Shown here: piece after piece, positions 3,130 through 57,588 of the stretch
Position numbering within the stretch: position 1 is the first letter of the stretch
Layout: each line of letters starts with the position of its first letter
From: Thecamonas trahens ATCC 50062
Lineage: Eukaryota > Protista > Apusomonadida
Assembly (NCBI RefSeq): GCF_000142905.1
Contig: NW_013657632.1
Coordinates: 124,001-188,000 of the forward strand
Length of the DNA stretch: 64,000 nucleotides
Reading direction: 5' to 3'
Notes under the pieces: model-generated
What the model was told of the DNA's origin: nothing
Seen by the model: only the letters and a program-made list of their open reading frames with translations
Databases searched by the model: none
Translations under genes and position numbers: made by a program

Positions 3130-6120
3130 CTAGATGAAACCTTCTTCTTCGGACCACTCGCCGTCGTCGCCGTCAAAGGCTGCGGCGTCAAGTCCTCCGT
3201 GGAGGCCAACCGAAGCCGATGATCCAGCTGGCTGGCGTGGGTTGCCAGAAGCGTCGGTGGCTGGCGGGTGCAGCGGCGTGCGCGGCACCTTGGCTCGCTC
3301 GCCAAACGCTGCTACATACTCGTCGTAGTCGCCAGTGAGATTCGCCGGCTTGGGTGGTGGCTTGGTGACCGAGACTACAGCCTTGCCCACAATCGGAATG
3401 ACAGGATCGTCTTCTGGCGCTGGCGGCGGGAGCGCGTCAGCAAGCTCGGTCCGCTCTGGACTGGTCATCATCGTCAGCGAAGTGTCGGCAGCGTGAGGGC
3501 CTGGCGGCGTCCGCGGGATCTTGGGCCGCGAAAGTAGTGGATCCGGTGCAATACCGCCGTCTGCGTTGCTTGCGGCAGCCACTGGCTCGGAGTTGGACGC
3601 GGTCTTGTCATCGTCACCGGTTCCAGACTCGATCTCTTCGGCGAGCAGCGAGTCATCGGTTTCGATATCAACGTCGTCGTCGTCGTCATCGTTGTTGTCG
3701 TCATCGTCGTTGCTGGCGTGAGAGTCATCACTGAGTCCATCATTGCCACTGCGATCGTAGCCGCTTGCACCACGGAGCGAGTCGGATGACATCGGGCGCG
3801 AGGATGCGCGCGACGACGACCGGCGTGACGACGGGCGAGATGAGTGGCGCGATGCGGGGCGCGACGAGTGAGCCGGGGTCCGCGGGCGGGCCGGAATGGC
3901 GTCATCGTCGCTAGCGGCTTCAGTGGCAGCAGCACGGGCGGCTCGGGCCTCGTCATGCTGGGCGAGCGAGGCTTCGACGCGCTGCGACTCGTGGAGCGCC
4001 TCCTCCAGGTCGGCTAGGTATCGGGAGCAGAGGAGCTGCTCGCCTTGCAGCGTGTGCGGCGGGGGACGGAGCGACTCGGGATCCTGCTCGACAAGGTAGT
4101 CATCGGCCTGCTCCTGCTCGTCGTGGTCAACTTCGTCCTCCTCATCGTCGGAGATCATGCCGTCGGTGTCGTCAGCGTGGAGCTGGTACATGACGTGGTT
4201 GATCTGAGTGGCCAGCATTTCGTCTGCATTGTCCTTAAGGTTGAGTAGAAAGTCTTCAAGGCCGAGCTCAAAGGCAGCATCCTTGATAGCCGAGAGCGAG
4301 AGGATCGAGTAGAGCGTGCCGTTGGCGTAGGTGCGGATTTCTTCGTGGTCAAACTGGAGGAGGACCATGAGGACGGCAATAACATCGGACGCAACAGCTT
4401 CGCACTTGTTGCGGCCGGCGGAGCGGAGAGAGAGGTTCATCAGCAGGGCCGCACCGTACTCGATGGTGTACTCGGAGAGCACGTCGGGGTTGCGGAGAAT
4501 TGAGGTGAGCCAGGCAATGATGTTGAGCTCGATCATGCGCGACTGCGGCGTGCGACGGATGGAGATCTTTTGCAGTGCACCGAGCGCGTGCTGGCGGGTG
4601 AGGTTGTCGTCGGGCTCGGCAAACATGACCTGGGCAAGGACCTCGACGCACTCGGCAGTCGAGAGCAGGTACTCGCGACCGGCGGCTTCGGACGCCACAA
4701 AGTCGACCAGTCGCGCGGCGTACTCTTGCAGGTATCCATCCGAATGAAGAAGGAGATGTGCAAGGAGCGACATGCGAGTCCCGTCTGTTGCCCGAGTCTG
4801 CTCGTGGAGCGAGAACAGATCTGACTCGATGTACGACTGCATGACCCGCTTGCGAAGCGCTGCCGGCCGCGACTGGGTCAATCGCCACCGCAGCGCCTGC
4901 AGAATGAGCGTTCGCTCCTGCGCCGAGAGCGCCGACTCCGGGCCGAGGTCAGTGCGGACCTTTGTGTATGCCAGCGGTGCAAAGGTGGTGATGATAGCCA
5001 TGCCAGGGTCAGGAGCATCGTTGTCAGGGCCGACGGCGTCGTCCGAGGTGGCATCGGCGGCGGCTACCGGCGGCGCCGGACCGGGTGAGACGGGGCCACC
5101 CTGTAGCTCGGGGTCAAATGAGACCGGCGGGCGGCGCGATGAGAGTGCGTCTGGGCGAGGTCCAAGCAGCACGTCCTCGCCGCCAAGCGGAATGACGTCT
5201 GCCGAGACGAGGCGGGCAGCGAGCGCGCCCATGTACTCGGGCGAGAGTTGCGAGCCCTTGAGAAGCGCGGAGACGACATCGGTCAGCTCGCGTGAGAGCG
5301 CCAGCGTCTGCTGGTACTGCAGCGAGGCGACTTGGGCGCGGTCGTTGGCGGCGGCGACGGCAGCGGACGACGCCCCGCCGGCCTTGGCGCTCTTGCCATC
5401 GCTTGCCCCACCCACGAGCTGGGCAGACGAGTTGTGAAGAACCGCAAGCTGGGGAAGCGAAGTGGTGCGGAGGACGGCGGCGAGGAAGCGGTCGAGGCGG
5501 AGGAGCAGGCCGCCGGCCCACTCGTCGAGGAACAGCTCTCGAAACGAGGGATGCTCGGTCGGGTTGGGCACGTACGGCAGAGCGTAGTAGGCCACAAACT
5601 CGGAGGTCTTGCACAGCGCGGCGCCCTTTTTGGCCAGAAAGGCCTTGAACATGCTCATGGCTCGCGGGAGGTCGGCATCGTCGCGCGGGGTCGTGTTCCA
5701 CGAGTGCAGCGGATAGATGGCAAAGAAGATGTGGACGTAGAACTCGAGCTTGCGTGCGGTGAGGTCCTTGGCAAGCAGCGATGCCGGAAGATGCTTGCCC
5801 CACAGGCCAAAGAACTTCTTAGCATCGCCGCGCTTGAACGCCGAGAGCAGCGCGGCCTGCAGCTTGGCGTTGCGTCGCGCATTCCGGATGGCTTCCGACT
5901 GCCGGCGGCGCTTGGGCGAGAGCGGCTGGCCCTTGCGCTTGAGCTCGGCTTCGAACGCTGTCAGCGTCTCTTCAAACTCACCGTATACCAGATACTCGCG
6001 AACAATGCCATTGACGGCATCGGTATCAAACCTGGCGCCTCCTCCATCCTTGGTGCCATCTCCCTCGCTTCCCGAGCCATCGGCCCGCCGCCTGCGTCCA
6101 CGGGCGCCGGATGTACTCAT
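3130..6120 (-). CDS. ARMC9: LisH domain and armadillo repeat protein ARMC9 (ciliary)
   Basis: LisH (VNGIVREYLVYGEFEETLTAFEAE); family motifs KLEFYVHIFFAIYP, YYALPYVPNPTEHPSF, LQALRWRLT, ALGALQKISIRR, EYGAALLMNLSLRSAGR, YANGTLYSIL. Confidence 0.92.
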   Translation of the reverse strand: MSTSGARGRRRRADGSGSEGDGTKDGGGARFDTDAVNGIVREYLVYGEFEETLTAFEAELKRKGQPLSPKRRRQSEAIRNARRNAKLQAALLSAFKRGDAKKFFGLWGKHLPASLLAKDLTARKLEFYVHIFFAIYPLHSWNTTPRDDADLPRAMSMFKAFLAKKGAALCKTSEFVAYYALPYVPNPTEHPSFRELFLDEWAGGLLLRLDRFLAAVLRTTSLPQLAVLHNSSAQLVGGASDGKSAKAGGASSAAVAAANDRAQVASLQYQQTLALSRELTDVVSALLKGSQLSPEYMGALAARLVSADVIPLGGEDVLLGPRPDALSSRRPPVSFDPELQGGPVSPGPAPPVAAADATSDDAVGPDNDAPDPGMAIITTFAPLAYTKVRTDLGPESALSAQERTLILQALRWRLTQSRPAALRKRVMQSYIESDLFSLHEQTRATDGTRMSLLAHLLLHSDGYLQEYAARLVDFVASEAAGREYLLSTAECVEVLAQVMFAEPDDNLTRQHALGALQKISIRRTPQSRMIELNIIAWLTSILRNPDVLSEYTIEYGAALLMNLSLRSAGRNKCEAVASDVIAVLMVLLQFDHEEIRTYANGTLYSILSLSAIKDAAFELGLEDFLLNLKDNADEMLATQINHVMYQLHADDTDGMISDDEEDEVDHDEQEQADDYLVEQDPESLRPPPHTLQGEQLLCSRYLADLEEALHESQRVEASLAQHDEARAARAAATEAASDDDAIPARPRTPAHSSRPASRHSSRPSSRRSSSRASSRPMSSDSLRGASGYDRSGNDGLSDDSHASNDDDDNNDDDDDDVDIETDDSLLAEEIESGTGDDDKTASNSEPVAAASNADGGIAPDPLLSRPKIPRTPPGPHAADTSLTMMTSPERTELADALPPPAPEDDPVIPIVGKAVVSVTKPPPKPANLTGDYDEYVAAFGERAKVPRTPLHPPATDASGNPRQPAGSSASVGLHGGLDAAAFDGDDGEWSEEEGFI

Positions 6121-8801: not shown

Positions 8802-11056
8802 ATGGCGGACGTGACGACAGCGCTGGCGCTGGACCGCTCGTTTGGGTTTGCAGGTATGTCCTGGTCTCTCTCTCTTCCTCTCTCTCTCTCTGTGTGTGTG
8901 TGTGGCTCTGGCTGTGGCTGTGGCTATGGCTGAGCCCTTCCTTGGCGGTCAAATTTTGAAGGGAGCGGCCGTCGCGAGCCGTTGGTTGGTGGTGAGGGGG
9001 TGATGCTGTGGGGCACGGGGAGTGCGGGAGTTTGCGGGGCAAGGCAGAAGGGTGTGTGTGTGTGTGTGTGTGGAGATGAGTGCGTAAGGAAGGATACTCA
9101 TGTAAAGGTGGTTCTGTGGCTGTGCTGGACGCGCGTGTGTACGTGTGACATGGCGGGGTGGCTGGGTGCACCTACCCACTGGGCTGTGGTGGGTCACCCG
9201 GCGGGTGTACAGGAGCTGTGCCTGCGGGGCTCGTGCTGCACCCGAACCAGGAGCACATTGTGTACCCGCTCGGCTCGTCGGTAGTGGTGCGGACAATGGG
9301 GCAGGCGTCTGGTGAGCAGTTCCTTGCGGGCCACACGTCGCCAATCACCACGCTTGTGGTATCGCCGTCGGGACGGTATCTTGCGTCGGGGCAGGAGCGA
9401 TTCATGGGTCTCAAGGCCGACGTGCTTGTTTGGGACTTTGAGAGCCTCCAGCTTGTTCATCGGTTTGTTCTGCACAAGGCGGGAATCAAGGCGCTCGCGT
9501 TCTCGCCCAATGACAAGTATCTGGCGTCGCTCGGCGACGAGGACGACAACTCTGTGGTGGTGTGGGACCTGGAGGCCGGGGCGGCCATTTGCGGGGCGCC
9601 GGCGTCGATGGGCTCGTCGGGCGTGGCGCACACGCTTGCGTGGCTTCATGGATCCGAGACCTCGTTTGTGTCTGGAGGTGAGTACACGCTCCGCAAGTGG
9701 GAGCTCGACCTGAGCATTCGCAAGCTGCGGGCCGAGGAGGGCCGGCTTGGGCAGCTCAAGCGGATCATCGACACGCTTGTGGTTGCGCCAGGTGACGCTG
9801 GTGTGTACTGCGGCACGTCGACCGGCGACGTGCTGTACGTCTCGCTTGATACGATGCTCTTTCGGGTGTCGGGCCCGAAGAAGCCGTTCCCCAAGGGCGT
9901 CACGGCGCTGGCGCTCACACGGCACGCCGGAGTCATTGCTGGCTCTGGCGATGGCGTTCTGGCCTCGCTCTCGCCGTCGTCGCTCAAGGTGACCAAGGTG
10001 GCGCGGCTGGCGGGCGCAGTGACGTCGATTGCGCTCGACGCGTCGCACACTGCCATGTTTGTCGGCACCGCGTCGGCCAACATTTACACTGCAGTGACCG
10101 AGACGCTTGCGACTGAGCTGCGGACGACGTGCCATCCGGGCAAGGTCAACGACGTGGTGTATCCGTGCGACTACTCGGAGGTCTTTGCCACCGCAGGCCC
10201 CGAGGATGTGCGCGTGTGGAACTCTCGCACCTCTGAGGAGCTTGTCCGCATCAGCGTGCCCAACATCGAGTGCCATTGCGTCGCCTTTGCCGCCGACGGC
10301 TCGGCTATCTTCTCGGGCTGGTCTGACGGCAAGGTCCGTGCCTTTGGCCCCGAGTCGGGCACACTCCTCTTTGTCATCAACGACGCCCATCACGGCCCGG
10401 TCACCGCCATTGCGCCGTGCGCCGACGGTGAGCGCCTCATCTCGGGCGGAAAGGACGGGGAAGTCCGCGTCTGGCGGCTCATGGCCTCGTCGCAGGTCAT
10501 GGAGGCCACCATGATGGAGCATAAGGGCCCGATCTCGTCCATTCAGGTTGCTTCGAACGACATGGAGGCCATCACCGCTTCTGGCGACGGCTCGTGTATC
10601 ATCTGGGACCTGGGCTCGTTCATCCGCGTCCAAGTCATGTTCGCCCCATCGTACTTTATGGCTGCGGCGTACCACCCTGAAGAGGCGCAAGTTCTCTCGT
10701 GCGGTACAGACCGTAAGATCTGCTTCTGGGATGCCTACGACGGCTCAGCCATCCGCGAGATCGAGCTCCTCGACAACTGTGCCGCGAACTCGATCGCCAT
10801 TTTCGCCGACGGTGAGGCCTTTGTCTCGGGTGGCAACGATAAGCTGGTCAAGCTCTGGTCCTACGACGGCGGAGAGGTTATCGCCACAGGCTCGGGCCAC
10901 TCGTCCAACATTGTCAAGGTCGTCATTTCGCCCGACCAGTCAGAGATCGTTTCTATCTCCGAGGATGGCGCCGTCTTTGTCTGGGCCGTCCCCGCAGAGC
11001 TCATCGGTCCTGTCGGCGTCGGCTCACTGCGTGCTCTCGACCCTACCGCACGCTGA
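8802..11056 (+). CDS. CFAP52: Cilia- and flagella-associated WD40 protein CFAP52/WDR16; exons 8802-8853, 9213-11056; 631 aa
   Basis: Joined N-terminus LALDRSFGFAGAVPAGLVLHP; YPLGSSVV, SGRYLASGQ, GQLKRII, SEVFAT, SGWSDGKVRAFGPESG; WD repeats; GTATGT...CAG intron. Confidence 0.93.
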
Positions 11057-11935: not shown

Positions 11936-14900
11936 ATGTCTCACGCCTGCATAATGGCCGTCTTTGTGACAGCTTGTCTTGTCCATCTGGTGGCAGCCCA
12001 CCTCGAGTGGGGACCAGCCGTGGAACTCACCGATGTGTTCGGTAGCAACTCGCCAGCCGGCATGGGTCTCCGTGACCATGAGTCGGGGCACTCGTATGTC
12101 GTTGTGGGCCAGAGCGGGAAGATTGCGTCGTCGCTGAAGGCCGTCTCAGGCATGCACAATGCTGAGTTGGCCAAGGCTGAGTTTGTGCCCTTGGCTAGCA
12201 GTGTCGAGTCCATCGTCCGCGTTGCTGCCGGGTCGGCCAACGTCGCTGCGGTTGCAAATATTTTGCCACTCCATGTGGCCGGCTCGCTCGACCACATTTG
12301 CGGGCCCGGGTGCACGGGCAGGCTTCAACTGTTTCCCTTTTCCAAGGACGCCATGGTGCCGTCGCTTCGCCTTCCGGTGGCATCTGCGCCGGCTCAGATC
12401 ACGCTCTCCGCCGAGCTCCTCGTCCAGATTCATTCCGGCAACGTGTCGCACTGGGACGATGACCGGCTGGTGGAGCTCAATGGTGGCGCCGGATCGGCGT
12501 ATGCCACTGCTATCGCCTCGCTCTCTGACGGCACCATTGCAGTCCACTGCACCAGCGCGGCATCGACGGCAATGGAGATCCTCCGCCAGCTTGCTGTTGA
12601 GCTTGGCATCGACTGGAACGACGGCGGCGGATGTACTCGGGTCCACGCCACCTGCCTCCAGGCTGCACAGGCGGTGTTTGTGACGACGGGACGCGGAGCG
12701 ATCGCGCTCGTCTCGCAATCTGAGACGCGGATGCTTCCGCTTTCGAGTGGTGTGGCGCTCATGCCGCACCTCCATGACAACCTCGGATCGGCGGTGGTGT
12801 TCACCGAGGAGGCAGCGACTATGGCGGATCTCGAGAGAATTTCTGTGGTGGCCCCGGAGTCGATGGTATGGGACGGGACGCGGTGGCCGCTGATTGTAGT
12901 GGAGTGGATGGTCATGCTCAAGTCATCGGCGGGCGCGGGAGTGAGCGGAAGTCTTGCAGCGACGGACTGCGCGGCATGGGAGGGCCTTGTGGAGGATCTC
13001 TTCTACGTCACCGACAACCACGGGGTACAGGAACTGCTTCAGGCGACACAGGGACTCGAGTTCGCGTCGTTGACGCAACTGGGCCTGCTGCGGGAGGCGT
13101 CAGTGAGCGCCGAGTGCGGCGGCAAGCGGGCGCTGCAGTCGAACGGCATTGTGTTTGGAGCCGGAGCATCGTTCCCCAAGGCGCTGTATGCGGTGTGGAT
13201 GCTTGCTTTTGGTCTCCAGCATCCTTCGGCGCCCCGGCTCGAGTACTCCGCGGTGGGATCTGGGTCGGGTAAGCGGGCGATTGTGGCAGAGCAGATTGTG
13301 TTTGCCGGTTCTGACTCTGCATTGTCCGATGAGCAGCTACAGGCGCGGGGCGACCTTGTGATGCTCCCATCCGGAGTGGGTGCTGTGGTGACGCCTGTGC
13401 ACATCGAGCTGCTACCCGGGGCTCCGACTGTTCCGCTTGTGCTGTCGCGTGCGGCAGTGGCGGACATATTTATGGGGCGGATCTCGCGGTGGGACGATAG
13501 TGTCATTGCAGGACTCAATCCTGCGCTGGCGGACTACCTGCCGAGCGCGGCAATCACTGTTGTGGTGCGGTCGGACAAGTCTGGGACGACGTCGATTTTC
13601 ACGGCGGCACTAAGCTCGTTCTCACCAACGTGGGCGAGTGACGGCCCGGGCGAGACATCGTACACAGATGCATGGGCGCCGGGGAGCATGGCGCAGGAGG
13701 GCAACACCGGGGTGGCGCTGGCGGTGCTCAACACGGCCAACTCCATCGGGTACGTAGTGCTCGACGTTGCGATCCAGTACGAGATGGACATGCCTCTGCT
13801 GGTGAACAAGGCCGGCAACTTGGTGGCGCCGACGCTCGAGTCGCTGTCCGCGGCTGCGGGCGAGGCAGCATCGGCGAGTGCCAGCAAGCCGGCGCTGCCG
13901 TTTGTCAAATCCGTGGTGGACTCGAAGATTAGCAACGCGTGGCCGATTGCGGGCTTCACATACCTTTTGGTGCCGACGCGGAGCTCGCAGTCGTGCGAGC
14001 AGCTCAAGGCTGTGCTGGAGTACTACAAGTGGACACTGAGCTCTGTGACTGCGGCTATGCTTGCCGAGTCGATTGGGTTTGCGCCGATTTCAGATGCAGG
14101 GCTTCGAAGCGCGATCGAGAAGGTTGTGGACGGCGTGACGTGCGGCGGGATGCGGCTGTTGTCGCCGTGTGGTGTGGGCAAGTACCTTGACGCGAGCAGT
14201 GGTGAGTGCATGTTGTGTGCGAACGGGACATACTCGTCTGCGATGACCGACTTTATGTGTGTGGGATGCGACGCCGGATGGGTTGCGTCGGCGGGCTCTG
14301 GATCGTGCGACATCTGTCCGGTGGACACGTACACGTCTGCGGACGGCGGGCAGTGTCTCGAGTGCCCGGCATTCTCACGTGCTCTCCAGGCCGGATCACA
14401 CTCGATCGCGTCTTGCGCATGTGTGAGCGGGCGGTGGCGATCGCCGGTCGCAGATGCGATGATCGACGAGCTTGGCGAGATTGGAGTAGGGAGGAGCTCG
14501 ATCGAGCTGTGCCTGGCGTGCCCGGCCAACTCGGAGTGTTCTGGCGGCGATGCGCCGCCATCGACGCGGCCCGGCTACTGGGCGAGCGACGATGACGCAT
14601 ACACGGTGCTGCGATGCGAGCCGGCGGAGGTGTGCACGGGTGGCTCGCAGTGTCGGGCGGGTCACACGGGAACGATGTGTGCGACATGCCTAGAGGGATA
14701 CTACACGGTGGACGGTCTGTGTGTCAAGTGTCCACGGCATGTAACTCGGCGGCTTGTTGTGATGGTGATGCTGATGGTAATGATCATGCTGATGCCTGTG
14801 CTCACACCGCAGCACCGGCTGATGACGATGCAGGTTGCGCCGATCACGGCCAACTTTGCACAGGTTCTTGCGGCACTGACGACGCTTCAGCTGCGGTGGC

Positions 14901-17321
14901 ACCCCGGGCTGGCGTTTATGATGCGGATGCTTTCACCTGTGCACTGGATCAACATTGCGGCACCGCCCGAGTGTGCGCTGGAGCAGTCGTTCTATCTGTC
15001 ATGGGGCATTCGTGTGCTGCTCCCGCTCGCGATGTTTGGGCTTGTGCTGCTCGCGCTTTTTGTTGTGCTGGCTGTGCGGTTTGTGGCGCACGTGATGTAT
15101 GTGTGCTCTGCAAGTGTAGTTGCCGGCGGACGGCTGGAGCGTGTACTGCACTGGACATCGTACCGATCACTGCGGCGGAGCTTTTCTGTGATCAGCACTG
15201 CGTCGGCGTGCTCGTTCTTTGTGTTTTCTCGCAGACGCCACTCGAGTACTTTAACTGCTTCAAGGGAGCGGGCGGGCTGTGGTACCTGCAAGCGGACCCA
15301 TCGGAAGTGTGCTATGAGGGTCAGTGGATGCGGTACCTACCGCTTGCAGTGTTTGTTGTCCTGACGCACCTTGTGATGTTCCCTGTGATCATGGGCGTTG
15401 CGCTGTTCCTCGCGCGGAAGGAGCGGCGGCGGGATTCTATCGGGTTCCAGTCGTTCTTTGGATTCCTGTATCTGCGGTACACGCCGCGGTACTGGTGGTG
15501 GGAGTTTGTGGTGCTGATGCGCAAGCTGTCGACGTTTTGTCTGGCGATGTTCCTGTTTACCTCGCCTGTGCTTGCCGCGGCCCTGATCAGCATCGTGCAG
15601 GTTGTGTATCTTGTGGCGCACGTGTCGTACGTGCCGTACATCATGCCTGGGACGAACATGATCGAGGTGTGGCTGTGCGTGACCGTGGTTGTGTTTGCGG
15701 TCTTTGGGGTGTTCTTTGCGCCCGTGTTCGATAGCGAAGGCGCTGTGAAGCGGCGGACGCTGTCTGGGTGTCTCGGGCTTGTGCTTGTCGCGGCGTACCT
15801 GTTCCTGGGAATGATGTTTGTGGTGGAGTCGCTGCGGGCATGGAGCGTGGTGCGGAAGCGGGCGTACCATATTCTCACACGGCCGTGGCGATGGATGCGT
15901 GCCCCAACGGCGCATACGCGGCTGGTGTACCACCGCCACCCGGACCCGCTGATCAACTCGCGCGTTGTGCATGCACGCGAGCTGGCACCGTCGCTGGCGA
16001 CGTATCTAGAGATCCGTGACCCCGAAGCAGTGGCAGACTTTGTCACACCGGGAGATGATATGGATGCGGAGCTGACGGCCAACCTACTGCACGTGAACAA
16101 CTCGCTGCTCAACCTCTTTGACGTCCATGGCTCACTGCCAAGGCCACCTGCTGGGTCAAGCGTGGTGATGACGGATGCCGAGTCGCAGAGGACGCGCATC
16201 ACGACCCGAAGCCCATCGGTCAAGTCGTATCAGACCACATATCGCGGGGCATCAGATGGAGCCTCGGGTGTGGAGATGGACGATGTGATGTCCGATGCCC
16301 AGGCTACCGAGTTGCAAATGTCTGGTCCGTCTTTCGTGGCAGTGTCGACGTCTGACGTGCCCAAGTCGAGCCTAACTCGCTCGCTGCCTGCACCCGAGCG
16401 GCCGCACAACATGCCATCACTTCTGCGACTCATTGATGCTGTAAGTACGTCTGATGCCCGCGGAACGTCAGGAGGCTCATCCACAGACACGGACCTTGTT
16501 TCGCGCCAGATTCAGCGTGTCCACTCGGCTGGCATGACTGCGAGTTATGGCATGGGAGTCGTGACCGATGAGTCGCGCCCGCAGACACCGTTGGCACGTG
16601 GATCACCGACCCGGATTGGTTCAACTGGCGGCGTTCGGGTGTGGTGCAGCGCGGGCGATCGAACATCATGTCGTCTGACAGCCATGCGCAAATTGCGGTG
16701 GCGAGGGTCATCTCGATCGAATACTCGGAGCAGCTGTCATCGTCGACGTCTTCCAGCGGCGAAGTCTCGCCGGGATCTGACATCGCTTTGGTCGAGCGAC
16801 CAAACAAGCCTATCTCGGCGCAAGCCAGGCGTCGGATCTCGTCGGGCGACTTTTCGATGGTCATGACCAATGCCGAGCTGCTGCGGATGAAGGCGCCCAA
16901 GTCGCCTCCGATGACTCCGGGCACTGAGGCTAGGTCCGACATTGGGGCGACCGAGGTGAGATCAGCATCGGGGCGTACTCGTTCGCTCGGCAAGCCGCCA
17001 TCGGGACTGGCAAGTCGGCGGAATACTAGCATTTCAAACATTCTGAAGGCACAGCAGCGGCTTGTCCCCAAGGCCTCGTCTGGAAACTCGACATCATCGG
17101 CCACCGACTCGGGCTCGGACTTGGCCGGCAACGGTGCCGATTCTGTCTCGGTCCCTCGATCGGCGACAGAGTCACAAACACCCGATGCCACACACTCGGA
17201 GCTGCCGCCACAGTCCCGGGTGCAGGAGCCCTCGCAGACACGGACGTCATCATCATCATCATCGTCGTCGTCTTCACTTCTTCTCTCGTCATCGACCTCG
17301 ACCTCGACCTCGTCATTGTAG
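11936..17321 (+). CDS. Putative receptor: signal peptide, two PstS-like phosphate-binding domains, Cys-rich repeats, ~9 TM segments, Ser-rich tail (two frame breaks near 15225 and 16638)
   Basis: PstS motifs GAGASFP, YSAVGSGSG, FAGSD, RSDKSGTTSIFT, GNTGV, SIGYV, NKAG, WPIAGFTY; CxxC repeats; TM-block motif FGFLYLRY...YWWWEFVVLMRK; joins ORFs 11822, 14614 and 16641. Confidence 0.8.
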
Positions 17322-28717: not shown

Positions 28718-28817
28718 NNNNNNNNNNNNNNNNNNNNNNNNNNNNNNNNNNNNNNNNNNNNNNNNNNNNNNNNNNNNNNNNNNNNNNNNNNNNNNNNNNN
28801 NNNNNNNNNNNNNNNNN
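28718..28817. other. Assembly gap (100 N)
   Basis: Run of N. Confidence 1.
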
Positions 28818-36317: not shown

Positions 36318-36945
36318 NNNNNNNNNNNNNNNNNNNNNNNNNNNNNNNNNNNNNNNNNNNNNNNNNNNNNNNNNNNNNNNNNNNNNNNNNNNNNNNNNNN
36401 NNNNNNNNNNNNNNNNNNNNNNNNNNNNNNNNNNNNNNNNNNNNNNNNNNNNNNNNNNNNNNNNNNNNNNNNNNNNNNNNNNNNNNNNNNNNNNNNNNNN
36501 NNNNNNNNNNNNNNNNNNNNNNNNNNNNNNNNNNNNNNNNNNNNNNNNNNNNNNNNNNNNNNNNNNNNNNNNNNNNNNNNNNNNNNNNNNNNNNNNNNNN
36601 NNNNNNNNNNNNNNNNNNNNNNNNNNNNNNNNNNNNNNNNNNNNNNNNNNNNNNNNNNNNNNNNNNNNNNNNNNNNNNNNNNNNNNNNNNNNNNNNNNNN
36701 NNNNNNNNNNNNNNNNNNNNNNNNNNNNNNNNNNNNNNNNNNNNNNNNNNNNNNNNNNNNNNNNNNNNNNNNNNNNNNNNNNNNNNNNNNNNNNNNNNNN
36801 NNNNNNNNNNNNNNNNNNNNNNNNNNNNNNNNNNNNNNNNNNNNNNNNNNNNNNNNNNNNNNNNNNNNNNNNNNNNNNNNNNNNNNNNNNNNNNNNNNNN
36901 NNNNNNNNNNNNNNNNNNNNNNNNNNNNNNNNNNNNNNNNNNNNN
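36318..36945. other. Assembly gap
   Basis: Run of N. Confidence 1.
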
Positions 36946-57374: not shown

Positions 57375-57588
57375 NNNNNNNNNNNNNNNNNNNNNNNNNN
57401 NNNNNNNNNNNNNNNNNNNNNNNNNNNNNNNNNNNNNNNNNNNNNNNNNNNNNNNNNNNNNNNNNNNNNNNNNNNNNNNNNNNNNNNNNNNNNNNNNNNN
57501 NNNNNNNNNNNNNNNNNNNNNNNNNNNNNNNNNNNNNNNNNNNNNNNNNNNNNNNNNNNNNNNNNNNNNNNNNNNNNNNNNNNNNNNN
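57375..57588. other. Assembly gap
   Basis: Run of N. Confidence 1.

Follow-up and report, generated by a model that had tools for sequence, protein, structure and literature searches.

A predicted PstS-type phosphate-binding domain on a nine-helix membrane protein of Thecamonas trahens: a candidate eukaryotic receptor for extracellular phosphate

The bacterial phosphate importer PstSCAB, in which PstS is the binding protein, also passes phosphate status to PhoR/PhoB. In class C G-protein-coupled receptors (GPCRs), a flytrap and a cysteine-rich domain drive the membrane domain. A flytrap ectodomain likewise drives the intracellular output of receptor guanylyl cyclases and Venus kinase receptors (reviewed in PMC4026697). 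Here we describe a gene of the apusomonad Thecamonas trahens ATCC 50062 in which a PstS-type head is joined to a eukaryotic multi-pass membrane protein. It is a single gene at positions 11936-17321 (+) of the 64,000-nucleotide stretch that was analysed, called the window below (contig 48, positions 124001-188000, of a eukaryotic assembly of 28.7 Mb in 131 contigs). The encoded protein consists of a signal peptide, a degenerate and a complete PstS domain, a cysteine-rich stalk, nine predicted membrane helices and a long cytoplasmic tail (Table 1). We consider it probable, with moderate confidence, that this protein is a receptor-like sensor of extracellular orthophosphate in the plasma membrane; that it binds phosphate, that binding is coupled to the membrane module and what the output would be are inferred from the sequence.

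The second PstS domain (domain 2) carries the case for phosphate as the ligand. Its translated sequence scores 240.8 bits against the TIGR00975 equivalog profile, for which the curated cut-off is 205, and in a six-frame search of the genome this gene (227.8 bits) was the only one above the cut-off among 17 matches. Alignment to E. coli PstS (E 1e-43) allowed comparison of the ligand residues Thr10, Phe11, Ser38, Asp56, Arg135, Asp137, Ser139, Gly140 and Thr141, and all nine positions are kept in domain 2, as Ser412, Phe413, Ser442, Asp460, Arg545, Asp547, Ser549, Gly550 and Thr551. The one substitution, Ser for Thr10, is also seen in bacterial PstS proteins. The AlphaFold model of the domain matches the phosphate-bound Xanthomonas PstS structure 8ods with an E-value of 1.7e-27, a target TM-score of 0.89 and an rmsd of 3.1 Å over 333 columns. 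Compared to the PstS of bacterial PstSCAB systems, domain 2 is a homologous domain of the same fold with the nine ligand positions kept; the difference is that here it is fused to a eukaryotic membrane protein, in a genome that lacks PstC and PstA. Structures 2v3q and 4m1v, which we take to be those of DING or 'human phosphate-binding protein', fit domain 2 less well (target TM-score ca. 0.63, as compared to 0.86-0.89 for true PstS proteins). DING proteins are soluble phosphate binders of the PstS superfamily reported from eukaryotic sources, and we know of no eukaryotic genes of record for them. In contrast, domain 2 has its coding sequence on a eukaryotic chromosome, where it shares a reading frame with eukaryotic domains.

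The preceding domain (domain 1) has lost the phosphate-site residues. A single-sequence search with it gave only a weak match to PDB entry 8ods (E 0.031), and its AlphaFold model, built from 8 sequences, was poor. Because this model was too uncertain, the fold was assigned by profile comparison: a profile of domain 1 and its relatives aligned with the PstS profile over 248 columns at 99.7% probability (hhalign, E 2.3e-25). The domain is conserved in an ortholog and in six receptor-kinase paralogs, described below. Taken together, domain 2 is predicted to be a genuine PstS whose site is intact, and domain 1 appears to be a decayed copy. The initial annotation of this DNA, made from the sequence alone, had proposed a signal peptide, a degenerate PstS-like domain at ca. 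12200-13100 and an intact one at ca. 13150-14130, with the phosphate-site positions kept in the second domain and lost in the first. Residue alignments, together with the TIGR00975 search and the fold comparison that it had called for, bear this out with small shifts of the boundaries.

The same architecture occurs in a second organism. Ortholog P0002 is an uninterrupted open reading frame (ORF) of 1577 amino acids on a 5.2-kb environmental contig (ENA ERZ27290035, locus L029) that is unrelated to the Thecamonas assembly, and its parts follow in the same order. The two proteins share 42% identity over 1045 colinear residues and 52% in domain 2, and P0002 keeps every phosphate-site residue. Since P0002 repeats the architecture in an intact reading frame, the fusion is no chimera of the assembly and is not restricted to a single strain. 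A metagenome scan for further orthologs returned three loci, none of which was confirmed as an ortholog. One of these (L030) has an ORF layout like that of a bacterial pstSCAB-type operon, another (L031) is short and the third (L032) is fragmentary. On the latter contig (Ga0136560_1005225), positions 3206-5599 show split, weak (25%) PstS-like matches across 2.4 kb with short ORFs only, and this may be an intron-rich eukaryotic gene. A synteny search with the gene neighbouring the ortholog gave no match.

The 17 PstS-type matches in the Thecamonas genome fall into about nine loci. At least six of these encode receptor kinases in which a signal peptide and the pairing of a degenerate and a complete PstS domain are followed by a single membrane helix and two kinase domains. 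At a seventh locus, on contig 58, the coding sequence is split over several frames. Another locus, on contig 62, encodes a single PstS domain on a membrane anchor; in the tree its sequence stands apart on a long branch, and its site is partly altered. The gene that follows it downstream (L011:4131-9998) belongs to the nine-helix family discussed below and carries FG-GAP. In a tree of second domains, the Thecamonas gene and P0002 form a pair (SH-aLRT 98) that is sister to the six kinase copies (98), with all eight together at 100. Because the kinase and nine-helix tandems are sister clades, the tandem PstS unit has been shuffled between two receptor chassis, and it is only the nine-helix lineage that kept the phosphate site. 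The equivalents of Arg135 and Asp137 are replaced in all six kinase copies scored, and further ligand residues are replaced in most of them; among the eight tandem-PstS genes compared, the Arg and Asp are kept only in the Thecamonas gene and its ortholog. With these two residues lost, the receptor kinases are probably not phosphate sensors and would respond to something else. The Thecamonas nine-helix gene also has the shortest branch of the eight. Site retention and a short branch are as expected if selection for phosphate binding acted specifically in the nine-helix lineage.

As to the origin of the domain, which the initial annotation had proposed to check by phylogeny, the closest free-standing PstS proteins are bacterial, with 40-42% identity; the named one among the closest belongs to Anaerolineales. 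A tandem protein from Chloroflexota (P0003, Candidatus Viridilinea; 748 amino acids, 40% identity) contains two nearly identical intact PstS domains, so tandem PstS arrangements arise in bacteria too. The proposal that a bacterial-type domain was duplicated and grafted onto a protist membrane family holds in so far as the nearest free PstS is bacterial and the membrane family eukaryotic. The graft is not confined to this protein, however, as the tandem also heads at least six receptor kinases.

PstS heads are found on other eukaryotic receptors as well. In the receptor guanylyl cyclases P0005, P0006 and P0009 of molluscs (scallop, Haliotis and Solemya), a PstS ectodomain replaces the usual ANF-receptor flytrap, with all nine phosphate-site residues intact. 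P0007 and P0008 carry tandem PstS domains on 7tm_3 receptors, where the first domain keeps the site except for Leu in place of Phe11 in P0007. Two kinases (P0010 and P0011) also have PstS heads: one comes from a JGI metagenome, and the other is a Ser/Thr kinase of a Pandoravirus whose head is a tandem with a decayed site. PBP_like_2 domains on 7tm_3 proteins of Spizellomyces (SPPG_06488) and Plasmodiophora have been noted in passing (PMC3251606, PMC4815078). In view of the intact PstS domains on mollusc cyclases and 7tm_3 receptors, PstS has therefore been used recurrently as a sensor head in eukaryotes. These other heads cluster weakly with the apusomonad clade (SH-aLRT 83), and a single clade of eukaryotic PstS heads was not rejected in an AU test (p-AU 0.41), a result that is no evidence for a single origin; the group was named after the tree had been seen. 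A single old origin is possible on the basis of these sequences. The initial annotation had stated that no characterised example was known. This stands for the architecture, since no publications describing PstS with a nine-helix part, or tests of PstS-headed receptors, were found, but PstS on eukaryotic receptors has precedent in the 7tm_3 proteins and the mollusc cyclases.

The protein search returned the NCBI model of this gene at 100% identity, a protein of 1757 amino acids from Thecamonas trahens ATCC 50062 that is named 'phosphate ABC transporter' and annotated with the Pfam families PF12849, PF07699, PF24633 and PF06011. Its start is a Met downstream of ATG 11936 in the same frame. Profiles for PstC (TIGR02138) and PstA (TIGR00974) gave zero matches in the 28.7-Mb assembly, and both match 14 of 14 control genomes of bacteria and archaea. 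Because PstC and PstA are absent, a role in ABC import is excluded, and an ABC-importer component was rejected as a candidate. Together with the covalent fusion to a eukaryotic membrane protein, this makes the public name a misannotation.

The stalk and membrane part place the protein in a different context. The CxxC repeats and about nine hydrophobic segments of the initial annotation correspond to Ephrin_rec_like repeats plus a DUF7630 domain, found with Pfam, and to nine helices that span positions 14741-15837. The membrane coordinates are helices of the ortholog model transferred through the alignment; each frame piece of the gene was searched separately and the fold was taken from the natural, intact ortholog, whose membrane module was modelled by AlphaFold with nine helices (pLDDT 84.8, pTM 0.84). 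Conserved cysteines lie in the loops that follow helix 2 and helix 4, and basic residues in alternate loops. With the conserved loop cysteines placed outside and the basic loops inside, the model fits a topology with the N-terminus out and the C-terminus in. The juxtamembrane segment that follows is conserved with the ortholog and not with paralogs. Behind it lies the long Ser-rich tail that the initial annotation had described, which ends at the stop codon.

DUF7630 with the nine-helix module forms one of the largest families of the Thecamonas genome, with at least 134 copies. An earlier word-based protein search with the module found 3 proteins, which was too insensitive, and an exhaustive profile search in a library of 1.84 billion representatives took its place. 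It returned 32,334 cluster representatives at E ≤ 0.001 and 3,460 at E ≤ 1e-30, with the NCBI model of the Thecamonas gene in fourth position (E 1.8e-150). The initial annotation's assignment of the membrane part to a multi-pass eukaryotic family is supported by these numbers. In nearly all matches listed, the module is at the C-terminal end of a long protein. Ectodomain diversity was sampled from 24 database representatives, with a second family sample of 35 members; in 22 of the 24 and 25 of the 35 members scanned, DUF7630 stands ahead of the membrane module, and the heads include FG-GAP, beta-helix, Sushi, filamin, and TIG or Ig-like domains. The chassis marks are all present in the gene described here: the DUF7630 cysteine motif right before helix 1, the loop cysteines, and the loop motifs after helices 5 and 7. 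In the ESM Atlas, similar folds (TM 0.65-0.75) were matched in green algae, cnidarians, ciliates, sponges and haptophytes, and LRR heads occur on some of them. No solved structure or characterised member of the chassis family was found. Varied ectodomains on one module is the pattern of a receptor family.

The only named relative of the membrane part is a distant one, the fungal group of the Flc1-3 proteins, Pkd2 of S. pombe and TrpR of A. nidulans. The piece of the gene in the window scores 37.9 bits (E 1.2e-9) against PF06011 'TRP' (cut-off 28.5), over the last ca. five helices, and the two groups share a multi-pass membrane part, a large N-terminal ectodomain and a cytoplasmic tail. They differ in that no fungal-type N-terminal domain was found here and that the stalk is of the DUF7630/Ephrin_rec_like type; neither group has a solved structure. 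The 'TRP' label appears to be a distant match to this fungal family and not to canonical TRP channels. A canonical six-helix TRP/polycystin channel was rejected because no fold match and no PDB homolog was obtained: the TRP/PKD channel fold was absent from the Foldseek matches and from the top 50 VIA matches listed, and a profile search gave no PDB homolog of the membrane part.

Similar to class C GPCRs of the CaSR and mGluR type and to the PBP_like_2 plus 7tm_3 proteins, the Thecamonas protein combines a binding-protein flytrap, a cysteine-rich linker and a multi-helix membrane domain. Unlike these, it has nine helices of another family and a flytrap tandem with one decayed copy, and no G-protein coupling can be derived from it; PstS-headed GPCRs have not been characterised. 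The class C GPCR assignment (7tm_3) was rejected, as there was no match to PF00003 or to a GPCR fold and the model has nine helices. Direct parallels for a PstS head on a receptor are the mollusc PstS cyclases and the PstS receptor kinases of the same genome. Receptor cyclases and Venus kinase receptors have one helix and a catalytic domain, whereas no enzyme domain was recognised in the nine-helix Thecamonas protein.

From these comparisons a mechanism can be proposed. External phosphate would close domain 2, which is of the Venus-flytrap type, while the decayed domain 1 would serve as a fixed partner or scaffold. As in class C GPCRs, the rigid stalk with its many disulfides would carry this movement on to the nine-helix module, which would then change state, either by opening a path for cations (Ca2+), as reported for the distant Flc/Pkd2 relatives, or by signalling via the juxtamembrane segment and the long tail. 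The PF06011 group has been tied to Ca2+ homeostasis (PMC12028594, PMC9600462), and S. pombe Pkd2 reconstituted in vesicles passes Ca2+ on membrane stretch (PMC12028594). A bolder version, which is possible but doubtful, is that the protein is a phosphate-gated, Ca2+-permeable channel on a membrane fold that has no solved relative and that PstS-headed receptors (the apusomonad nine-helix proteins, the mollusc cyclases and the protist and fungal 7tm_3 proteins) together make up a class of eukaryotic sensors for extracellular phosphate that has gone unrecognised.

Several observations weigh against a phosphate receptor. The link to PF06011 is distant: the ortholog reaches only 16.7 bits, below the cut-off of 28.5, and matches with E ≤ 0.001 were obtained for only 11 of the 35 and 6 of the 24 family members sampled. 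The Foldseek comparison of the membrane part that the initial annotation had suggested was carried out with the ortholog fold and returned no solved relative; the best Foldseek E-value was 0.32 and the best VIA Z-score 6.7, which is noise for helical bundles. Because the membrane fold is without a solved relative, channel or receptor function cannot be read from the structure. The Pfam scan found no recognisable signalling domain in the cytoplasmic tail. Most other chassis members carry adhesion-type ectodomains, so the general role of the family may not be signalling. Finally, the assembled gene contains two frame breaks, with an explanation in hand for the first alone.

An unlikely alternative to phosphate sensing is phosphate capture, in which the protein would be a surface-tethered PstS scavenger that hands phosphate to a conventional transporter, or in which the nine-helix module would itself import phosphate as a transceptor or a new type of carrier. 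An intact phosphate site would serve capture as well, the single PstS domain of contig 62 on its plain membrane anchor resembles a tethered binder, and with no known relative of the membrane fold transport is possible. However, PstC and PstA are absent, the rigid cysteine-rich stalk suits signal transmission better than hand-over of a substrate, and more than 100 paralogs share the chassis with adhesion-type or repeat ectodomains that have no solute to deliver. Among eukaryotic phosphate carriers, we know of no binding-protein-dependent uptake system.

It is improbable that the protein instead serves, like its paralogs, in surface recognition or adhesion, with the PstS tandem as a structural or protein- or glycan-binding head that binds another anion or nothing. 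The prevalence of FG-GAP, beta-helix, Sushi and LRR heads on the chassis fits this proposal, as does the persistence of six kinase-linked tandems without a phosphate site, which indicates that the fold is usable without phosphate. What argues against it is that the gene and its ortholog keep every site residue at just 52% domain identity, with the PstS equivalog cut-off still passed. Were the site not under selection, retention this complete would not be expected at such a distance.

The integrity of the gene bears on the last rival. The two frame breaks that the initial annotation noticed are real in the assembly, as third-position GC switches from phase 2 (to ca. 15200) to phase 1 (to ca. 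16500-16550) and then to phase 0. The PstS domains, stalk and helices 1-4 lie in one uninterrupted open frame, 11936-15226, so the breaks have no bearing on the fusion of PstS to the membrane part. At break 1, ortholog P0002 follows phase 2 colinearly as far as the T run and phase 1 straight after it, with exactly one residue more. The most likely cause of this break is that the assembly misses one base of the T run, or possibly a very recent deletion, and not a micro-intron. The NCBI model bridges it with a GT-AG gap of 53 nt (window 15143-15195) that deletes 26 residues conserved in the ortholog, for which reason the model is wrong at this site. An intron at break 1 (GT-AG candidates of 38, 47 and 65 nt in addition to the 53-nt gap) was rejected as the ortholog is colinear through the 26 removed residues. 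At break 2 the NCBI model introduces a 41-nt GT-AG gap (ca. 16549-16589); the break is in the non-conserved tail, where the ortholog has diverged and provides no arbiter. A pseudogene or assembly chimera in which both breaks are genuine lesions is very improbable: two frame shifts within 1.4 kb and the invented gaps of 53 and 41 nt in the NCBI model would suit it, but third-position GC is high (0.65-0.85) in the expected phase gene-wide, changing phase precisely at the breaks, the rest of the gene is free of in-frame stops, an extra base in the T run gives exact colinearity with the intact ortholog, the continuous PstS-membrane junction is repeated on an independent contig, and similar phase changes occur in other family genes of the assembly.

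The gene itself is eukaryotic, as are its neighbours, and the GC content around it is ca. 60-63%. Directly upstream on the same strand is an intron-free ORF of 632 codons (window 9158-11056, +), whose product looks like a WD40-repeat flagellar protein. The window contains N runs at 28718-28817, 36318-36945 and 57375-57588, 942 bases in total, which are either gaps in the assembly or withheld sequence.

Table 1. Features of the tandem-PstS gene (window coordinates) and locations of related PstS loci in the Thecamonas genome
Feature	Location	Strand	Basis
Start codon and predicted signal peptide	11936-12004	+	Hydrophobic stretch, residues 5-23 from ATG 11936
Domain 1, degenerate, PstS-derived; phosphate-site residues lost	12092-13138	+	hhalign against PstS profile
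Domain 2, predicted intact PstS phosphate-binding domain	13139-14140	+	TIGR00975; alignment to E. coli PstS; fold match
Site codons of domain 2	13169-13174, 13259-13261, 13313-13315, 13568-13570, 13574-13576, 13580-13588	+	Alignment to E. coli PstS
Cysteine-rich stalk: Ephrin_rec_like repeats (best stretch 14285-14416) and DUF7630 (14609-14731)	14141-14740	+	Pfam matches
Membrane helices 1-4 (14741-14803, 14834-14881, 14990-15085, 15161-15226)	14741-15226	+	AlphaFold helices of ortholog mapped via alignment
Conserved outside cysteine in region of helices 1-4	14972-14974	+	Family alignment
Frame break 1, run of four T; one added T continues the frame	15224-15227		Ortholog colinearity; third-position GC
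Membrane helices 5-9 (15337-15414, 15499-15552, 15565-15630, 15646-15717, 15745-15837)	15235-15837	+	Alignment; ortholog model; PF06011
Two conserved outside-loop cysteines before helix 5	15256-15258, 15310-15312	+	Family alignment
Cytoplasmic juxtamembrane segment, end approximate	15838-16030	+	Alignment columns 501-570; low model confidence
Disordered cytoplasmic tail, first part, codon phase 1	16031-16571	+	No Pfam family; third-position GC to ca. 16500
Frame break 2, approximate; phase 1 to phase 0	16545-16600		Three-frame translation; third-position GC
Ser-rich disordered tail, phase 0; stop codon 17319-17321	16572-17321	+	ORF list; third-position GC 0.66-0.76; no Pfam family
Six receptor-kinase loci	Contig 13 (head-to-head pair), contigs 75, 39, 30 and 49		PstS genome search
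PstS receptor-kinase family loci	L012:738-5975; L013:3873-9287; L016:1246-6687; L017:3590-8800; L015:3758-8757; L014:1292-6669; L018:2991-8345	+; -; +; -; -; +; - (in this order)	
Single PstS with signal peptide and one C-terminal membrane anchor	Contig 62, L011:1885-3606	+	TIGR00975, 171.6 bits

To our knowledge, the perception of external orthophosphate by eukaryotic cells, as opposed to that of the phosphate status inside them, is poorly understood across the range from microbes to mammals, and a receptor for it has not been pinned down. The Thecamonas gene provides a sequence-defined candidate, in which a ligand module that is understood at the atomic level is placed on a signalling-type membrane protein, with natural controls in the six paralogs whose site is destroyed and in the ortholog that keeps it. 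The public name 'phosphate ABC transporter' and the exon model, which is wrong, need correcting. If the proposed role is true, this protein would be the first member of the chassis family with a predictable small-molecule ligand, and adding phosphate would give an assay of its output. The gene thereby offers a handle on an orphan eukaryotic membrane family of more than 32,000 sequence clusters, and the PstS-headed guanylyl cyclases of molluscs suggest that the idea may extend to animals.

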